Made by a program: the position numbers and the translations under genes | Shown: positions 3,299 to 51,897 of the stretch, piece after piece | Layout of the letters: every line of letters begins with the position of its first letter | How positions within the stretch are numbered: the first letter of the stretch is position 1 | NCBI GenBank assembly: GCA_965285935.1 | Contig: OZ260661.1 | Coordinates: 121,334,001 to 121,398,000 of the forward strand | Direction of reading: 5' to 3' | From: Ophelia neglecta | Lineage: Eukaryota | DNA length: 64,000 nt | Notes under the pieces: model-generated | The model's input: only the letters and a program-made list of their open reading frames with translations | Told to the model about the DNA's origin: nothing | The model's database searches: none

Positions 3299-3705
3299 AC
3301 TCTTTGGTACCCATCTCTCAAAGTCACAATTACATCTCAGCCAATGTCAACTCCAGGAATCGATAGAACTTTTTGTTCAATAAATCCTACAAAGTTCACT
3401 GAGCGTGTAAAACATATTTGAGCACAATGGGTCAATAATATCGCCGGCAGCCGGCCAGGGAGGTGATCTATCACTCAAACAGGACAAATAGATAGATTGA
3501 GGGATTTCTGACAAGTCATATTTGAAGGTTTCTGTGATCCCAGTAGTCACAGAGTCACAAGCCGAAACCCTCTATGCCTTGTGTATACCCTTATGCCTTT
3601 GACTATGTACCCTTCTTTGTATAGTGTATACTCCCTCTCTGTACTCTCTGTAAAACCCCATGTATACCCCCCCCCCCTCATATATCTCTGTTTACCCTTC
3701 ATATA

Positions 3706-4146
3706 CTCCTGTATATCTCCTGTATACCTCCGTATAACCTCTGTATACCTCTGTATAACCCCTGTATACCTCTGTATAACCCCTGTATACCTCCGTACAA
3801 CCCCTGTACAACCCCTGTATAACCCCTGTATACCTCTGCATAACCCCTGTATACCTCTGTATAACCCCTGTATACCTCCGTATAACCCCTGTATACCTCC
3901 GTATAACCCCTGTATATCTGCGTTTTACCCCTGTATACCTCATGTATACCTCATGTATCCCTCCGTATAGCCCCTGTATAACCCCTGTATACCTCAGGAT
4001 AACCCCTGTATACCTCAGTATAACCCCTGTATACCTCCGTATAACCCCTGTATACCTCCGTATAACCCCTGTATACCTCATGTATACCTCATGTATCCCT
4101 CCGTATAGCCCCTGTATAACCCCTGTATACCTCAGGATAACCCCTG
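3706..4146. repeat. Minisatellite, 21-bp unit (cccctgtatacctccgtataa), with a higher-order block repeated 138 bp apart
   Basis: Directly visible. The variant block 'cctcatgtatacctcatgtatccctccgtatagccc' is at 3938 and 4076. It explains ORFs 3581..3970, 3692..4081 and 3942..4151. Confidence 0.97.
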
Positions 4147-5879
4147 GATAGCTTCTGTTAACCCTTGGCTACCTCTGATCTCCCCCCATACACCCACTGT
4201 ATACCCTCCTGTCCCTCCAAACATAGCTCTACCCATGCATACCCCCGTACCCCTTTCATACAAGGCAGCCCTAGGGCATCCAACTCAAATCATAATATCC
4301 ATCCTTATATCAAATAATCCAGTTTTCGAGCCTGTGATGTTAGACATTGTGGGTGGACAGACATGCAATGATTGTGTTGTTGGCCTGTCCATAACTAGGA
4401 CTGTCATGCCTGTTCCTGTCTCCTGGGGCAATGCCAGGCCCCCAAGTCCCAGGCTACAGCATTGGACCCTCTCCAATTGGTCTATTAATGGAAATTAAAT
4501 TTGGTGAATAGTTGTCCAGGGGGGAGCTGGAAATCACATCAGAGCATGTGATGGTGAGCAGGAACCAAGAGTTCTTAGGCCAAGCCTTGGGAACTGGTGA
4601 ATTTCACCCCAACTTCCTGTGGCCATGTGGCCTGATAGCTCCTGATAGGCGAATGATTGGCCAGCGAGCACAAGGCCACCTTCTTGATTGAGTTATTTTG
4701 TATTATAGACCCAATACGCACCGCTTCAATCCCAATCACCCTGGAGAGCTTTCTGCCTCATTGGATAGATATTGTAAACCTAATCTCAGTGAAGATCTAC
4801 TTCAATAAAAGCAGCAAATGAAGGGGACACAGCCCATATCACAGAATACATGCTAGAAAGACCAACCCTAATGGCTTTCCTATTCTTCAATTTCCTGCAT
4901 TTGGAATCAAATGGGCCTTTTTAGTTTTTTATTTTCAAATTTGACAGCAAGTGACTTTGGTGAAATTGCATTGATAGGAAGGCATGCCTAAATAAAGTTC
5001 TTTCCCAGCAGTGGCTGGTGTCCCCGATAAGGAAGTCGACAAAGAAATGTACTCCCCTGGAGCAGGGGGGTTTAATGGCACTTTCCGGTTCAAGAGGATT
5101 CCCGACAGTTCATGCTACTGTACAGAGACAAATTGGAGACATGGCATATTGCTTCCTGGAGATACCACAAACCACTCCTAGTCTCTGCTGCTCAGCCAAC
5201 CCTCATCTCCTTCTGTGCCTGGAAACCAAATACCTTGTCTTCCGCTTTCAAAAGCCATGAGCTGGCTGGCAAGGAGGGTCTAGTGGGTATCTGTTTATGT
5301 GGACTGGTTATTAAGGTGGTACATGCTACAAGCTGTTGATAAGAGAAGGAAAGAATCTGTCATGTTATCTGCCAGCACCATTCACTGCCCTTTTACAAGG
5401 CTGGTACGATAGGGCGGGAGGCCATACAGACAGCTATCTACATGTATTACCCTATGTTGTATATTCCTCTGGCTATTTCACCTCACATCTCACTTATCAT
5501 GGAGTAATACCATCTCTTCTTAGCCCTATACCCTTCACACAATGTCATACTCAGAACAACAACCCATCATTATAATCTTTACATAGCAGAGTCCTCCCCC
5601 AGGAAATGCCATTACAAATCTGTATTTATCATTTCTCTACACACATCAGGATGTATGTGTCTGCGAGCAATGTCTGAATCTAAACAACCTTCACCACTAC
5701 TCTATAAAGAAACCCAATATAAGCATGTAGTTCTCAGAGCCACAATTCCTTGGCTGTAGGGCTTTAAAACATTTGACTCAAACTACATGTGTGTTGAAAA
5801 GTAAACTAAACCATTTTGTTCCACATATTCCACTGGGAACTCAAACAGTGGTTAATACAATCTTTTGTTATTTACTCAC

Positions 5880-7261: not shown

Positions 7262-9928
7262 TAAACTAGGGGGTCCTTAGCTAATACAGCCAATGGATGG
7301 GGGGAAGGAGGAATGGTATGACATGAGCACAAGATCAGCTCATTGACTGACAGTAGATACAAGTCAGGGTGGAATGGAACAACATACAAGTAAAATGTCA
7401 AGTAATCACCACCAGACACAAGCAAGGTCATAGGTAGGGTACAGGTAGGTTATATTCGGGTTATAGGTAGGCCATTAACACATTGCCACTGCTAAATTCT
7501 ACTAAGCTAAATTTTTATACAGAGGTTAATGACATAAACCAAGAAAGATGACAGTACTACTAGACCTCACAAGCTCAGGTCTTGATCAGTGTCAGCATAG
7601 TGCCACACTGATATGGAGCTGGGATCTTCACATTACATGGCTTAGACTGTAGATGTTTCATCATTAATCAAGGTGTGTGTGATCCATGGAGCCTCCACAT
7701 CCCAGACAGACACTACTGGTATACATGTAGTGGGGTCGGTGAGAGACACAGGTAGGGAGGGGCCTGGCCAGATGAACAGCCTGACACCCATCTCTCACCC
7801 CACCCTCTCTGGATAACATGACAAGCAGGTCTGGCAAGGGAGGAACACACACAAACATACACTGAAAGCCGGTAAATGTTCACCACACCAAAAGTTTGCT
7901 ATTTAAGGAACTGCCTTGCTATCATTCAAAGTTTAATGATATAAGCCTTCACCTTGTCTTGTTTATGCTGCAGTTGCCTCAGGTGGTGAACATTTTTGTT
8001 ATTTTAAATTTTACTTGGATGTTTGTGACTGTGGTATATATCTGGAGCTGTTGACGCATGCACACACTTCAATATGACAGTATACCTGGCAGTCACTGTG
8101 GGAATCCACACTAAACCTAGATGTCAATAACTTGGCCTTCAAACTGATTTATATAGCAGCAGAAGTAAAAACTGCTCCCAGCCTCTGCATTTCTAAAAGA
8201 ATCATTATGTAGTAATGAGCGGAAATGAATGTGAGCCTGTATGGACTTGTGTGGGCTGGCCCCTCCTCCAGACCAGGTCCCGGTAGTGTGTGAGTTCTGG
8301 GTAAATTAGAGGTCGTTAGGGGTCTGTAGATAGTGCTATAATGATTTACTATTGTTTTCTGGGGAGACTGGGGCCTTCTCGGGTTGTGGTGGTAGAGCTG
8401 GCAGCCTGTTATCATGTTGTGGTGACATACACCACTAGATGAAGGGCATGTAGCCAGAGAGCAGGGAGAAAACAACACAGGATGAGCTGGTCACTAATTG
8501 TTGACCTTCTAAATGTCACACAACACACGTATCACTCCCTGGGCCAGCTTTTACCCACTTTTTTTCTCTAGTAATATCATTTTTAAGTAACAGAAATTGA
8601 TATCACAACCATTAGCAACCCAATTCAGATCAGCACAACAGCCAATAGGGTCATATTAACTACAAGTCCTTGTACATATAATATAAACTGGTCTACATTG
8701 GGTTTTACATTCTGAGGAAACCATCCTTCGCAGCTCATTCTTTGCCAGCCAATCCCAGATGATGTTACAAGCTGCTGTAATGACCATGTGTCCTGGTATA
8801 TCAATGTGCTATTGTCCTGTTTTTCCAGGTATTTCCAGGTATTTCCTGGTATTGTGACTGAGAGAAGTGTTACCTGTGTTTACATGTGTAGTAGTGTAAC
8901 AGATGTGTGTGATGAGTGACCTGGTGATCATACTATTTACCAGGTAATAACACCAAGCCCAGCTGGCCAGCTGGCCAGCTTTAATTGACCTGATGGCCAC
9001 CACAATATCATCAATGATCAATATTGCTCACCTTTTACTCAGTCTTGAGAACATTTATCAGGTATTTAATACCAGAAATAACAATAATGCTCGTAGTTAT
9101 ACATGTACATCCAGAGTCAAATGATGGCTTCTACACTATAGTCTACATAACACAACCTCTAGAATCAGAAGATGTCTACTATAATAAACTAAAAGTGTCA
9201 CGACTAAATGTTTAGTCCTCTTCAGGCTCTATAGTAATGTGTGTGATGATGAGTACAGCGAGATGGGTACAGTGTGGGGTGGGGCCCTGCAGACAGCCTT
9301 AATGCTATGAGGAGGAGGGTGGTGGCTGGTGAGGGTCACCCTGTTATTACCTTCCTGATAATTGGATTAGAAGATACAGGGTTCAAACCTTGGTCAATAA
9401 TCACAACATGGCTTCATTATACACCCGCTCCCCACACGCCCAGATCAAAGTACAGATTCAATCTCATTTCAAAGGCCAGTAGGTAATATTGTGATGAAAG
9501 CTTATGGTAAAATTAATCTGCCTAACAGGGAGGGGAGCAGAGACAAAGGCCAGGTCCTGACTGAACACCTACCCAGTCTCCATGAAGCTGGTCTTTGAGC
9601 AGCTGATCAGGAGACTACAGAACCATTGGTAACACAATACCACAGCCAGCCGAGATCAATACCAGCATGCAGCACAGCCAAGAGCAGGGACACTCCTCAT
9701 TTAATTAGCACTGTCCACTTCCCCTGAGGTGACCAGTTATATATACAGGGCTGGTGTGGACTATGGGAGACAATGGGTAATGTATACCCAGGGATTATCA
9801 CCTGGCTCAGTAATCACCTGGCTCTGTAGTGACACCTCCCCACTGCTGTATTGTGGATGTACTGTGACTGTACTGTCACCGTGTCATGGCTGTGTTGTGT
9901 ATTGTGGCTATAATGTAACTGCAATATG

Positions 9929-10510
9929 GTGACTGTATAGTGACTGTATAGTGACTGTATTGTGACATGACTGTATTGTGACTTGACTGTATTATGATGT
10001 ATAGTGACTGTATCATGCCTGTATTGTGACCTGACTGTATTGTGATGTATTGTGACGGAATAGTGACTGTATCATGACTGTATTGTGACATGACTATATA
10101 TTGACTGTATTGTGACATGACTGCATTATGACTGTATTGTGTCTTGACTGCATTATGACTGTATTGTGACATGACTGCATTATGACTGTATTGTGGCATG
10201 ACTGCATTATGACTGTATTGTGACATGACTGCATTATGACTGTATTGTGACATGACTGCATTATGACTGTATTGTGTCTTGACTGCATTATGACTGTATT
10301 GTGACATGACTGCATTATGACTGTATTGTGACATGACTGCATTATGACTGTATTGTGACATGACTGCATTATGACTGTATTGTGACATGACTGCATTATG
10401 ACTGTATTGTGTCTTGACTGCATTATGACTGTATTGTGTCTTGACTGTATCATGACTGTATTTTGACATGACTGTGTTATGATGTACAGTGACTGTAAAT
10501 TGACTGTATA
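9929..10510. repeat. Minisatellite, 27-bp unit (tgactgcattatgactgtattgtgaca), with degenerate flanks
   Basis: Homogeneous core at ~10105-10460. It gives the 9-aa periodicity in ORFs 9876..10763 and 10094..10453. Confidence 0.97.
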
Positions 10511-10670
10511 GAGACTGTTTTGTGATTGTATTGTGATGGTAGGTATGAAGGCTAGTGACTATTGATGAGCTACCTGTCTTTTCCACCAAGCACAATGCAG
10601 TCTCATGTCGAGTAAGCAGGAGAGCGGCTTGCCTGTTGAATGCTGCCGACGTCCACAGGAAGCAGCTTAC

Positions 10671-10763
10671 TCTCTTCCCATTCAACAGGCGTCTCCGGAC
10701 TGCTATCAGGCTCTTCCTACCTAACCTGAACCCAGCCACTAATACAGGTGTTTCTTTAAACAT
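10671..10763 (-). CDS. Candidate alternative first coding exon MFKETPVLVAGFRLGRKSLIAVRRRLLNGKR, phase-0 donor
   Basis: ATG at 10763, donor AGA|GTAAGC after 31 codons, CpG-retaining context. An alternative donor CAG|GTAGCT at 10574 would be phase 1. Confidence 0.35.
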
Positions 10764-11801
10764 CTCAGTCTCTTCTCACAATATATCACTCAATGCCAGC
10801 ATCGCCTGCTCTGAACAAAAGACAAACACTTCCCAGCTATCAATAAATAACCACACTTTTAGATGGTAACAAAGGTTTCCAGCCATGGTACTTTTTATGG
10901 CTAAGGTTTTTTCCCTTCACGAAGCTCTCCTTTTAATTCTCAGACAGATTCTCCGGCCTTTCTATCCATTATGAAGGCTCATAGACTCGGAGCAGCTGAA
11001 GCGGACGACTGTTATCACACAGCAAGAACATATAGACAGAGTAGACAAAGTGGGCAAAAAATCTTATAAATACCTGCAACTAAGCATGTCTTGTCCTTAA
11101 ACTGCAGTGAGCTGGGCTTAATACCTGACAATCAGCAGCTTTGTCCCCACTGAGGCTAAAAGCCCTGAGAGTATTAGAAGTCTCCAATACAGACCCGAGT
11201 GTTCTCCTGGATACAAGGAGCAGACAGGCGGGCAGGGCCTCACAGACAATACCTGTAGTTTACAGGCGACAGCCAGTCTGTTGCCAGATGGAGACAATGT
11301 CTCTCAATGTCCAATTAGGAACCTCTAATTAATAACTTGATCTGCTGTTCGGCTGTCAACCTGGCTGAGTCACTCTACCTGGCTCTACCTGTGGGGCGGA
11401 GCTGATCAACTGCAGGGTCCCTGGCTCACTCTGCCTATGGTAGAGTGGGTAAACTGTCCTACCTGTGGACTTGCTCTCTCTGGCTCTACTCTATAGAGGC
11501 AGATCTATAAATAGTCTGAGTGGTCACTCCTACTTTCTATAACTGGCAGGTTGATCTTTCTTACTAAGGGGTACCAAAGTTCCAATATGAAGTCTTGATA
11601 AGATGTGGAGTAGCTGATGAGGTATAAATGGGTTTGTCTCCTACCTACATCCTACCATATCTGTAATCAAGTTCTGATGTTTTAGGTTTATTGGCTCTGT
11701 GTGGCCTGGATTAAATGTCACCAGAACAGCAACTGGATACAGGCAGTGATTTTACATTACAGTTCAACCCAAGTTTACATCTAGAAACAAGCCAGACTCA
11801 C

Positions 11802-23000: not shown

Positions 23001-23276
23001 ACTTAAAATGTTCAGCCATTCAGTACCAAATCAATTGGAATAAATCTCACTAGTACAGAAGTAATTTATAGTCCAGTGCCTGTGATTGTTGCCCTCGTCT
23101 GCACATTGTTCACACCGGTGTTTCAATATGTATTTCCCTGGTTCAACATGTCCTCCACCTCCACTTCATCTCCGGTATGCCCAGCCATGTTCTACTTGTG
23201 ATTTGCAACCCAAAATAGCTGATTAATTCATTTGCTGATAGTTATTAGGTCTATCACAACATCTAACTCTGACTAT

Positions 23277-24031
23277 AGAGGGAAAACACACAGAAGGAGA
23301 CTGTCAGGAGACAATCTACAAGTACGCAGAGAAAACACACGGACAGAGACTGTCAGGAGACAATCTACAAGTACGCAGAGAAAACAAATGGACAGAGACT
23401 GTCAGGAGACAATCTACAGGTACAGAGAGAAAACACACAGAGGAGACTGGCAAGAGACAATCTACAGGTACAGAGAGAAAACACACAGACAGAGACTGTC
23501 AGGAGACAATCTACAGGTACAGAGAGAAAACACACAGACAGAGACTGTCAGGAGACAATCTACAAGTACGCAGAGAAAACACACAGACAGAGACTGTCAG
23601 GAGACAATCTACAGGTACAGAGAGAAAACAAACGGACAGAGACTGTCAGGAGACAATCTACAAGTACAGAGAGAAAACACACAGACAGAGACTGTCAGGA
23701 GACAATCTACAAGTATGCAGAGAAAACACACAGACAGAGACTGTCAGGAGACAATCTACAGGTACAGAGAGAAAATACACGGACAGAGACTGTCAGGAGA
23801 CAATCTACAGGTACAGAGAGAAAACACACAGACAGAGACTGTCAGGAGACAATCTACAGGTACAGAGAGAAAATACACAGACAGAGACTGTCAGGAGACA
23901 ATCTACAAGTACAGAGAAAACAAACGGACAGAGACTGTCAGGAGACAATCTACAGGTACAGAGAAAACACACTGGCAGGAGACAATCACAGCCAGAGACA
24001 ATCACAGCCAGAGACAATCACAGCCGGAGAT
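23277..24031. repeat. Minisatellite, 49-bp unit x~14, followed by a 16-bp derivative (gagacaatcacagcca) x3
   Basis: Unit is agagactgtcaggagacaatctacaggtacagagagaaaacacacagac. It explains the 294-aa ORF, whose 49-aa period equals three units. Confidence 0.97.
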
Positions 24032-24595
24032 AATCCACATTGCCCTCAACTCCTCCTTATGGAAAGTACAGTTCCGTCATCCCTTTTGCTTGCTTTTCTC
24101 TTATCACCAAGGCTAGGCTTCCTGGAAGTTGTCATGACAACCAAGATTACTAGCGGAACTGAGGGTTCAGGGTCATGCCATGTGCTGGGTAATTCAAATG
24201 TTTGCTTCCCAGTGAGATCATAGAAAAATATACATACACACCTTACAAACACCCATCAGGGCTAAACTCCAGAACAGCTGGAAGCAGTCAAACACTTGCA
24301 GTCAGTCTCTCTAATGTTCTAACTAGACTCACAGTCATGGAAATCACACCAAACAGTCCAGGAGTTTAAACGCAAGTGTGATTGAGAAACACAAATTATA
24401 CATGAATTGCTGTATAATTATGAAATATTAGGATGTTAGTGTAAATCTGTGTTGTGTTGATATTATCAGAACATGATATATTTCCCCGGTTGCCACGTGT
24501 CTTGTTACGTAGTTTAAACCATGATGGAGTATTGTTTGACATTGACCATGCCTAGTGGTGGTGTAGGGCCAGTGCCATGGGTGGCCAGGTACAAT

Positions 24596-32159: not shown

Positions 32160-33071
32160 GAGCTGTATGTCCTACAGGTAGTGCAGTAGTATACTATAGC
32201 GTGGGCAGGTTTTTACTAAGGTTAACCCAAACAGCCTGGTAGCCTGTTTGATGGGGAGCCCTATGAGCTGGTATGTCCTACAGGTAGTGTGGTAGGTTTT
32301 ACTGAGGTTAACCCACTGATAGTCTGTAGTCAAGGGGAGCCCTATGAGCTGGTATGTCCTACAGGTAGTGTGGTAGGTTTTACTGAGGTTAACCCACTGA
32401 TAGTCTGTTTGATGGGGAGCCCTATGAGCTGGTATGTCCTACAGGTAGTGTGGTAGGTTTTACTGAGGTTAACACACTGATAGCCTGTTTGATGGGGAGC
32501 CCTATGAGCTGGTATGTCCTACAGGTAGTGTGGTAGGTTTTACTGAGCTTAGCCCACTGATAGTCTGTAGTCAATGGGAGCCCTATGAGCTGGTATGTCC
32601 TACAGGTAGTGTGGTAGGTTTTACTGAGGTTAACCCACTGATAGTCTGTTTGATGGGGAGCCCTATGAGCTGGTATGTCCTACAGGTAGTGTGGTAGGTT
32701 TTACTGAGGTTAACACACTGATAGTCTGTTTGATGGGGAGCCCTATGAGCTGGTATGTCCTACAGGTAGTGTGGTAGGTTTTACTGAGGTTAACACACTG
32801 ATAGCCTGTTTGATGGGGAGCCCTATGAGCTGGTATGTCCTACAGGTAGTGTGGTAGGTTTTACTGAGGTTAACACACTGATAGCCTGTTTGATGGGGAG
32901 CCCTATGAGCTGGTATGTCCTACAGGTAGTGTGGTAGGTTTTACTGAGCTTAGCCCACTGATAGTCTGTAGTCAAGGGGAGCCCTATGAGCTGGTATGTC
33001 CTACAGGTAGTGTGGTAGTAGAGAGGGCAGGTTTACTGAGCCAGGTATGCTGTGTGATGGGGAGCTCTATG
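32160..33071. repeat. Minisatellite, 80-81-bp unit, ~11 copies
   Basis: 'cctatgagctggtatgtcctacaggtagtgtggtagg' at 32341, 32421, 32501, 32582, 32662, 32742, 32822 and 32902, with slightly diverged copies at both ends. Confidence 0.98.
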
Positions 33072-44720: not shown

Positions 44721-45693
44721 ATCCAGAGATGACAAAAAATAGGCTAATCTCCTGCCTGATTAATTCAAAGAAATGAATTTTTCAGAGTTTTTTTTTTACT
44801 ATTTTATCTCTTTCTTGCAAGCCTATGCCACTTCAAAGTGTGACCAGACTGTCAATCTTGCCTTATCCATATCTTCATCTTTTGTCTGCAGAGACTTATT
44901 TAAGAATTAAAACTGCATTACACCAAAGCTGGTTTTCTTTTGTTTCCATGCGGACACATTTCAATTGTCTTGTTCTTAATTCTTGATAAAGATGTACTAT
45001 CTACAAAAGTCTGTGGAGTGGCATTAAGCATTGTGCTCCATCCATCACAGCGCATTATGTGGGGATACAACAGTGGAAAATATTGGCTGTGTGACACAAC
45101 CATCATGTCACTATGAGGATTTATGGCAGGCAGCCAGATTACCAGAAATCTCCGAGGGGATTCCTCGCCAAAGCCAAGCCATCCAAGGGGGGACATCCCG
45201 AACAATCCCAACAATCGAGGGTCTTCATGCTAAAATCACATCTATTCATAAGGCACATCAACTAAATCAGCATCCACATTCAATGGGAACAAACCTCAGA
45301 GATGGCAATTTGGAATAATGTGAAAATAGAAGCGGTGTTTTTTGTTTCTATCCTCATTATGGTTCCGCTGGGACCTTTTCATTATTTTACAATTTCCAAC
45401 TGCCATTATTCACCCTGGCTTTCACTGTCTATTCAATTCAGGTCACAACCTCTCTTTCACACATAATTTTACCCATAACCACAAATTTTCTGGAAACAGA
45501 TAAAGATTCAAAGTTCATATCAATCAGTCTAGATCATCCACGGTCCTGACTCTCACAATCCAAACTGTTCCACTGGAAGCACACCATTAACAGCTCATTA
45601 ACAAAGTATCTAGCTACATTTTTCAGGCTGGTTATTGATGTGTGATCAAATATTAATTAAGTATTTAATAATACACATATTTCCAAGACTTAC

Positions 45694-45776
45694 CATTAGA
45701 TTTTGCTGTGTAAATAAGTCTTGTCCAGCCAAACTAGAGGAGACACTCACCTACAAGAGAAAAAACAGAATTAGTC
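45694..45776 (-). other. Recursive splice site (ratchet point) at 45751/45750 with a 57-nt RS-exon (45750-45694)
   Basis: Minus strand reads gactaat-tctgttttttctcttgtag|GTGAGT...CTAATG|gtaagt. The exon is open only in phase 0 (VSVSSSLAGQDLFTQQNLM). Confidence 0.7.
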
Positions 45777-51812: not shown

Positions 51813-51897
51813 AACTATCATATCATCAAGGTCAACTATCATATCATCAAGGTCAACTATCATATCATCAAGGTCAACTATCATATCATCAAGGTCA
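51813..51897. repeat. Perfect 21-bp tandem repeat x4, generating four TCAAGGTCA motifs
   Basis: aactatcatatcatcaaggtc starts at 51813, 51834, 51855 and 51876. Confidence 0.97.

Follow-up and report, generated by a model that had tools for sequence, protein, structure and literature searches.

Position 45750 on the minus strand of the 64-kb window (the whole 64,000-nucleotide stretch of DNA analysed here) is probably a recursive splice site with a short RS-exon, lying within a PDZRN3-like gene, in the giant intron that interrupts its PDZ1 domain. Its sense position in that intron and its membership in an enriched, same-strand, donor-bearing class of motifs argue that it is most likely a real recursive splice site. 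The genome holds at least 31 complete modules of this class, each made of a fused acceptor-donor and a mini-exon, and these matter more than the single site at 45750.

Anatomy of the candidate site

Read on the minus strand, the motifs at the site follow each other as GACTAATTCTGTTTTTTCTCTTGTAG|GTGAGT, 51 further bases and ATG|GTAAGT (Table 1). The original prediction had described a CTAAT branch-point match, an AG-free pyrimidine tract, TAG|GTGAGT and ATG|GTAAGT 57 nt further on, and its reading of these motifs was exact. The putative branch A is at 45771, ~20 nt 5' of the AG on the minus strand. A pyrimidine tract and YAG thus stand directly before GTRAGT, which is the fused acceptor-donor of a ratchet point, and the 57-nt spacing to ATG|GTAAGT agrees with a short RS-exon of about 30-70 nt that has a downstream 5' splice site. 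Seven AG|GTRAGT junctions occur on the two strands of the 64-kb window, and only the one at 45750 has a good AG-free tract.

The putative RS-exon begins GTGAGTGTCTCC at window position 45750 on the minus strand. Its frame 0 reads VSVSSSLAGQDLFTQQNLM and is stop-free, and stops occur in both frame 1 and frame 2, in line with the claim of 19 clean codons in phase 0 only. The open 19-codon frame alone is weak evidence, since the chance of finding one is about one in three per frame. The codon-usage score of the 57-nt exon was neutral, at 0.02 bit per codon, on a log-odds measure trained on local genes that is too weak in this genome for ranking exons.

The site region is single copy in the 762-Mb genome, where the site itself is C1:121379750, in sense orientation to the host gene. 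The region matched no family in Rfam, and a Pfam search of the long ORFs of the 64-kb window returned nothing relevant. A search of sequencing runs of any kind for DNA of the site found only three, all DNA-like and from one sample, and no RNA run. A second haplotype of the sequenced animal is ~0.6% divergent, with its nearest variants at 45660 and 45849; it carries no variant in the 89-nt module, where only about 0.5 would be expected.

Table 1. Coordinates of the candidate site, the host gene and related junctions. Positions are those of the window unless another sequence is named.
Feature	Position	Strand	Remark
Branch-point match CTAAT	45774-45770	minus	read directly; fits yUnAy; putative branch function
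Polypyrimidine tract, AG-free, 14/16 Y before TAG	45769-45753	minus	read directly
Acceptor AG of candidate ratchet point	45752-45751	minus	joined directly to donor
Donor GTGAGT of candidate ratchet point	45750-45745	minus	starts right after acceptor AG
Putative RS-exon, 57 nt (19 codons)	45750-45694	minus	last codon ATG
Second donor GTAAGT (ATG|GTAAGT)	45693-45688	minus	would define the RS-exon
Alternative first coding exon (exon 1b), ATG GAC TTT GTG ATA GTA AAG|GTAGGT	38520-38500	minus	MDFVIVK
PDZRN3-like exon 1	C1:121482149-121482862	minus	donor CAG|GTAAAT
PDZRN3-like exon 2, 87 nt	C1:121480727-121480813	minus	encodes PDZ1 start; codon-boundary end TTG|GTAGGC
VNGQDL (VNGQDLSKSS) exon	C1:121327125-121327364	minus	codon-boundary start after TTTTTTCCAG
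Six further exon matches	down to last exon at C1:121256230-121258128	minus	
Second candidate ratchet-point module	L013 6381-6460, about C1:121424381-121424460	minus	
Strict-site cluster, four sites	C8:80339973-80575878 (80.34-80.58 Mb)	minus	
Strict-site cluster, three sites	C9:75580086-75657316 (75.58-75.66 Mb)	plus	
Strict-junction cluster	C2:10649960-10722025	plus	
Strict-junction cluster	C5:14035643-14074736	plus	
Strict-junction cluster	C5:87523602-87580588	minus	

A PDZRN3-like host gene and its giant intron

The window corresponds to C1:121334001-121398000, and we sampled its flanks as alternate 10-kb pieces. A 674-codon minus-strand ORF ending in LSVTTV (L008 2230-4251) forms the final exon of a PDZRN3-like gene; it matches PDZRN3-like proteins of many lophotrochozoans and vertebrates, with E values down to 1e-170. 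The closest protein homologues of the gene are <60% identical. For the gene map, the genome was searched exon by exon with full-length homologues, so that exons were searched singly and not as a joined model. An ORF with RING and zf-TRAF domains in L016 is the first exon of the gene. Its assignment to a TRAF gene was dropped, there being no TRAF-MATH exon nearby. TRAF-type MATH domains are greatly expanded in this genome (137 matches, many of them in tandem on C1 and C9), and Toll-like receptor genes form a cluster at 120-200 kb from the window (flanks L018, L019 and L021).

Exon 2 and the VNGQDL exon are separated by 153.4 kb, and this gap splits the PDZ1 domain. The window lies between these two exons and therefore wholly in the gap, giving a host intron longer than 64 kb with an upper limit of 153 kb. 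The next coding exon located, the VNGQDL exon, begins 52.4 kb downstream of the site, which is in sense orientation, on the minus strand, in a long intron of a host gene predicted from homology. Both the end of exon 2 and the start of the VNGQDL exon are phase-0 boundaries. The host intron being phase 0, the 57-nt exon would stay in frame: its length is divisible by three and it is open in the host reading frame, which bears out the claim that it is frame-preserving. The VNGQDL exon itself opens with AG|GTAAAT (L024 about 1690-1710, minus; C1:121327364), so that a real coding exon starts with a weak donor-like hexamer because of its Val-Asn codons.

One PDZRN3 coding match was found in the window, a short exon encoding MDFVIVK that lies 7.2 kb downstream of the 45750 site. 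The heptapeptide corresponds to the mollusc isoform N-termini MDFIILK|VNG, with a chance expectation of 1.6e-4 for the window strand. In many species, short isoforms that lack the RING domain have a private N-terminus spliced onto the VNGQDL exon, and by homology the MDFVIVK exon is the conserved alternative first coding exon of the short, RING-less PDZRN3 isoform. Its ATG is in good Kozak context. An acceptor-like CTTTTTCCTAG lies at 38546-38536 (minus), 15 nt upstream of that ATG.

The middle exon of PDZ1 (~30 aa, GIFVSRI...DRIIK in homologues) was not found in the window or in the sampled flank pieces by a local profile, three homologue searches, a back-translated pattern and a search with the PDZ_6 family; it probably lies in pieces of the intron flanks outside those sampled. 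Because the short isoforms join the MDFVIVK exon directly to VNGQDL, the missing exon is most likely upstream of the window. The site would then sit in the intron directly 5' of the VNGQDL exon, whose boundary with this intron is phase 0.

The MDFVIVK exon also bears on the suggestion that the 57-nt exon, which ends in ATG, could supply a start codon. The short isoform already has a conserved start of its own in this gene, which would make a start at this ATG unnecessary. The suggestion is thus weakened by the conserved first exon 7.2 kb downstream, and we consider it unlikely that the terminal ATG serves as a start codon.

Two kinds of low-complexity sequence were seen elsewhere in the window. 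At 23223-24220 (plus), all three plus-strand frames are open for ~900 bp; the stretch is T-poor and A-rich, with an AT skew of 0.25, and looks like low-complexity DNA holding no gene. Intronic minisatellite arrays occur at 32175-33032 (minus), 3550-4168, 9817-10775 and 51813-51897; in one, an 80-bp unit recurs about ten times, and another consists of four perfect copies of a 21-bp unit.

We scanned ~104 kb of intron DNA on both strands with relaxed settings, namely AG|GTRAG with a moderate pyrimidine tract. Ten junctions were found. Only two of them, the 45750 site and L013 6438 (C1:121424436), are followed by a GTRAG donor 20-110 nt downstream; these two lie on the sense strand, and their tracts are the best of the ten. 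The second junction reads TTGTAG|GTGAGTGA and is followed by a 50-nt exon, which has a stop in frame 0, and then by CAG|GTAAGA. It is 44.7 kb upstream of the 45750 site on the identical strand, and the two modules would split the 153.4-kb gap into pieces of 56.3, 44.7 and 52.4 kb. The 45750 site is a singleton in the strict genome list, and its partner appears only under the relaxed criteria.

The motif class across the genome

The strict pattern Y10-N-YAG|GTRAGT has 89 matches in 762 Mb, one of which is the 45750 junction (C1:121379745-121379764); the reversed control has 35. The contrast is far stronger for the full module, defined as a strict junction with GTRAG 36-66 nt downstream. Thirty-one such modules were found, the 45750 site among them, against one in the reversed control. 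A GTRAG at a control distance of 136-166 nt follows only 5 of the 89 strict sites, where composition predicts 6.3%, so that the downstream donor present at 31/89 is about six-fold enriched (Fisher p = 1.3e-6, binomial p = 1.3e-15). About seven more sites have exons of 26-35 nt. By these controls, roughly 3-10% of such modules are expected by chance, and the motif class in this genome is clearly non-random. The predicted length of the RS-exon is divisible by three in 18 of the 31 modules (p about 0.004). By eye, many of the 31 modules have a T/C-rich stretch right after GTRAGT.

The strict sites are also clustered. After the removal of two repeat families, obvious paralogues and poly-C tracts, 74 sites were left. 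These form 12 pairs at distances of up to 100 kb, where 0.73 are expected, and 21 pairs at up to 250 kb, where 1.75 are expected. Every clustered pair in this 74-site set is same-strand. Most members of the same-strand clusters on C8, C9, C2 and C5 (Table 1) have a donor 30-66 nt downstream, and these clusters probably represent several ratchet points per long gene. One candidate ratchet point, at C8:80525299-80525374 (minus), has a local tandem duplication of a 21-nt unit that begins with its own GTGAGT.

A control with GTRATG behind a matching acceptor gave 112 matches, and by a tally made by eye over half of the 100 listed are copies of two repeats. The ~42 non-repeat sites among the 100 matches listed form two pairs within 250 kb, one same-strand and one opposite. 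The dispersed repeat families, one with TTTCCCCTCTACAGGTGATG and one with TTTCCTTTCCCTAGGTAATG, account for about 45 places among the matches listed in this control, and such families inflate naive counts of acceptor-like motifs.

Some of the strict sites can be placed in genes. Those at C2:29000259 and C2:29191045 (plus) are just 5' of an Eph-receptor ligand-binding exon at C2:29209429-29209887 (plus), and the one at C5:67743692 (minus) is among the minus-strand PDZ exons of another gene. Ephrin, RYK (WIF) and THOC2 were located in the genome as well, and the strict list holds no site beside any of the three.

These counts bear on whether splice-like motifs have met by chance in this very long intron and the 45750 module is unused. 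The genome is large, 35 strict junctions and one full module turn up even in the reversed control, and an estimate from composition gives about two chance modules per genome; the invariance of the 89-nt module on the second haplotype is uninformative here, with only ~0.5 variants expected. Nevertheless, about 1-3 modules are expected by chance against the 31 observed, a sense position inside a long intron is expected for only a few per cent of chance modules by our estimate, and the same intron contains a second module on the same strand. We therefore regard a chance origin of the module as quite improbable.

Proposed splicing of the 57-nt exon and known recursive systems

From the observed motifs, gene context, orientation, phase and genome-wide non-randomness, we infer use of the site by the spliceosome and the following order of steps. 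In the long, RING-containing isoform, the 57 nt would first be recognised as an exon through the CTAAT/tract/TAG acceptor and the ATG|GTAAGT donor. The upstream coding exon would then be spliced to 45750, removing the first 28-101 kb of the intron. This ligation would set the exon end before GTGAGT and so rebuild a 5' splice site, which would in turn be spliced to the VNGQDL exon 52.4 kb downstream, so that the 57 nt would normally be skipped. The second module, 44.7 kb upstream, would work likewise. Removal of the host intron in steps, as originally proposed, is likely: the giant intron, the orientation, the second module and the genome statistics have been added in its favour, and the use of the site itself is the part that stays with inference.

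The skipping of the 57 nt would depend on the competition between two donors. In homologues, the exon before VNGQDL ends in K, Q or E, and on that pattern the rebuilt site would in many cases read AG|GTGAGT, which would equal or exceed ATG|GTAAGT in strength. As the donor of the RS-exon, ATG|GTAAGT, is about as strong as GTGAGT, skipping would not be guaranteed. Going by the exon order predicted here, inclusion would probably insert 19 residues between DRIIK and VNGQDL, within beta-strand 4 of PDZ1, and it looks harmful to this domain rather than like a designed cassette. No insert comparable to the 57-nt peptide precedes VNGQDL in any of 120 homologues (0/120). The clam locus (L034), which is too distant for a comparison of the junction itself, has one weak AG|GTAAGA junction 2.5 kb upstream of its MDFIILK exon, without a clear downstream donor.

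The 57 nt could instead be an ordinary exon that is expressed and only looks like a donor in its first six bases: either a rare in-frame cassette of the long isoform or an internal 5'-UTR exon, the latter with a promoter further upstream in the intron and a transcript running on into the MDFVIVK exon. A strong acceptor and a strong donor do lie 57 nt apart, ATG|GTAAGT is at least as strong as GTGAGT, and the length divisible by three and the open frame fit a phase-0 intron. In many homologues, moreover, the VNGQDL exon is likewise joined to 5' exons that are isoform-specific, and the acceptor-like CTTTTTCCTAG 15 nt before the exon 1b ATG would suit an upstream non-coding exon. Each of the two versions meets its own difficulty, however, since a cassette in the long isoform would probably interrupt PDZ1, and in a 5'-UTR exon the terminal ATG would open an upstream ORF, out of frame with the MDFVIVK start and overlapping it. 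The peptide is without relatives, and its codon-usage score is neutral. The genome-wide class further argues for selection on the GTRAGT start itself: were such starts accidental, short exons bearing them should number about one per genome (an estimate from assumed round numbers), against the 31 modules found. An ordinary exon at this position seems unlikely to us.

Alternatively, the exon might act as a decoy or quality-control element: by drawing in the splicing machinery it would control the retention of the intron or the disposal of aberrant transcripts, and it would play no part in stepwise intron removal. For vertebrate RS-exons, a role as a binary switch that acts against transcripts from cryptic promoters has been proposed (PMC5126111), and the module is located 7.2 kb upstream of an internal alternative first exon. 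Nothing specific speaks in favour of a decoy here, and because the 57-nt exon has no stop in the relevant frame, its inclusion would not trigger nonsense-mediated decay, which counts against it. We consider a decoy function very improbable.

The original prediction saw in the 57 nt a possible switch between a zero-length exon and a coding cassette. The length divisible by three and the open host frame agree with such a switch, and the unconserved peptide and neutral codon score weigh against it; the idea of a cassette switch is possible but unsupported. A stronger form, in which the RS-exons of this lineage are tuned for frame preservation instead of working as poison exons, with the 18 of 31 lengths divisible by three as its ground, and the 45750 module is a regulated switch that inserts 19 residues into PDZ1, is quite improbable in our judgement. 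If it were true, a win of the downstream donor would change or disable PDZ1 of PDZRN3 with no decay of the mRNA.

Recursive splicing has been demonstrated in flies and vertebrates. Our literature search found no report linking it with PDZRN3, annelids, other spiralians or lophotrochozoans, which agrees with the earlier remark that it is poorly documented outside flies and vertebrates, and the candidate described here thus comes from a lineage for which no report was found. The modules cluster on the same strand in long genes; PDZRN3, an Eph receptor and a multi-PDZ gene are among them. The 31 modules offer sequence-level evidence for the stepwise removal of giant introns in the third great branch of the bilaterians, as well as a concrete list of junctions for testing with RNA. 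In the gene model of PDZRN3 obtained here, PDZ1 is split by a gap of 153 kb, and the RING-less isoform has a conserved first exon inside the gene.

Drosophila ratchet points provide the closest general comparison. They have a tandem acceptor-donor followed by a cryptic RS-exon of ~50 nt and a downstream donor, and competition between the donors decides skipping or inclusion (PMC8605326). Like the sites in Ubx, kuz and Bx (PMC8605326, PMC6110457), the candidate joins a tract and AG to GTRAGT, and its cryptic exon, about 50 nt long, likewise has a donor further downstream. It shares with them a sense position in long introns of long genes, with several sites per intron or gene, and a motif that is enriched genome-wide. 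Fly cryptic RS-exons are generally out of frame (PMC8605326), whereas the 57-nt exon is divisible by three and open in the host frame, as 18 of the 31 modules here are divisible by three. The fly sites are also backed by RNA intermediates and deep conservation, and the candidate here is known from its sequence alone.

The vertebrate RS-sites of Sibley et al. (2015; reviewed in PMC5126111) resemble the candidate in their YAG|GT junction. They share exon definition through a downstream 5' splice site, with competition between the rebuilt donor and that of the RS-exon. Their hosts, too, are long genes, which are largely neural or developmental, and the vertebrate junction consensus is looser than the fly-like consensus of this genome. 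RS-exons repressed by the EJC have been described in vertebrates (PMC6224609). Cryptic RS-exons of vertebrates usually contain premature stops (PMC5126111), as the original prediction had stated for many of them, and the 57-nt exon differs in being stop-free in frame 0.

The nearest counterparts of the 57-nt exon itself are the Ubx microexons mI/mII (m1/m2), which are expressed, frame-preserving RS-exons (PMC8605326). Like them, it is a short exon divisible by three that opens with a donor, one that is functional in Ubx, and re-splicing could remove it, or it could stay in the mRNA as a coding cassette. Ultraconservation and known presence in mRNA set the Ubx microexons apart from the 57-nt exon, which is a prediction and whose inclusion would probably interrupt PDZ1. 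With Ubx m1/m2 as precedent (PMC8605326), RS-exons that are expressed and preserve the frame are not new in kind.
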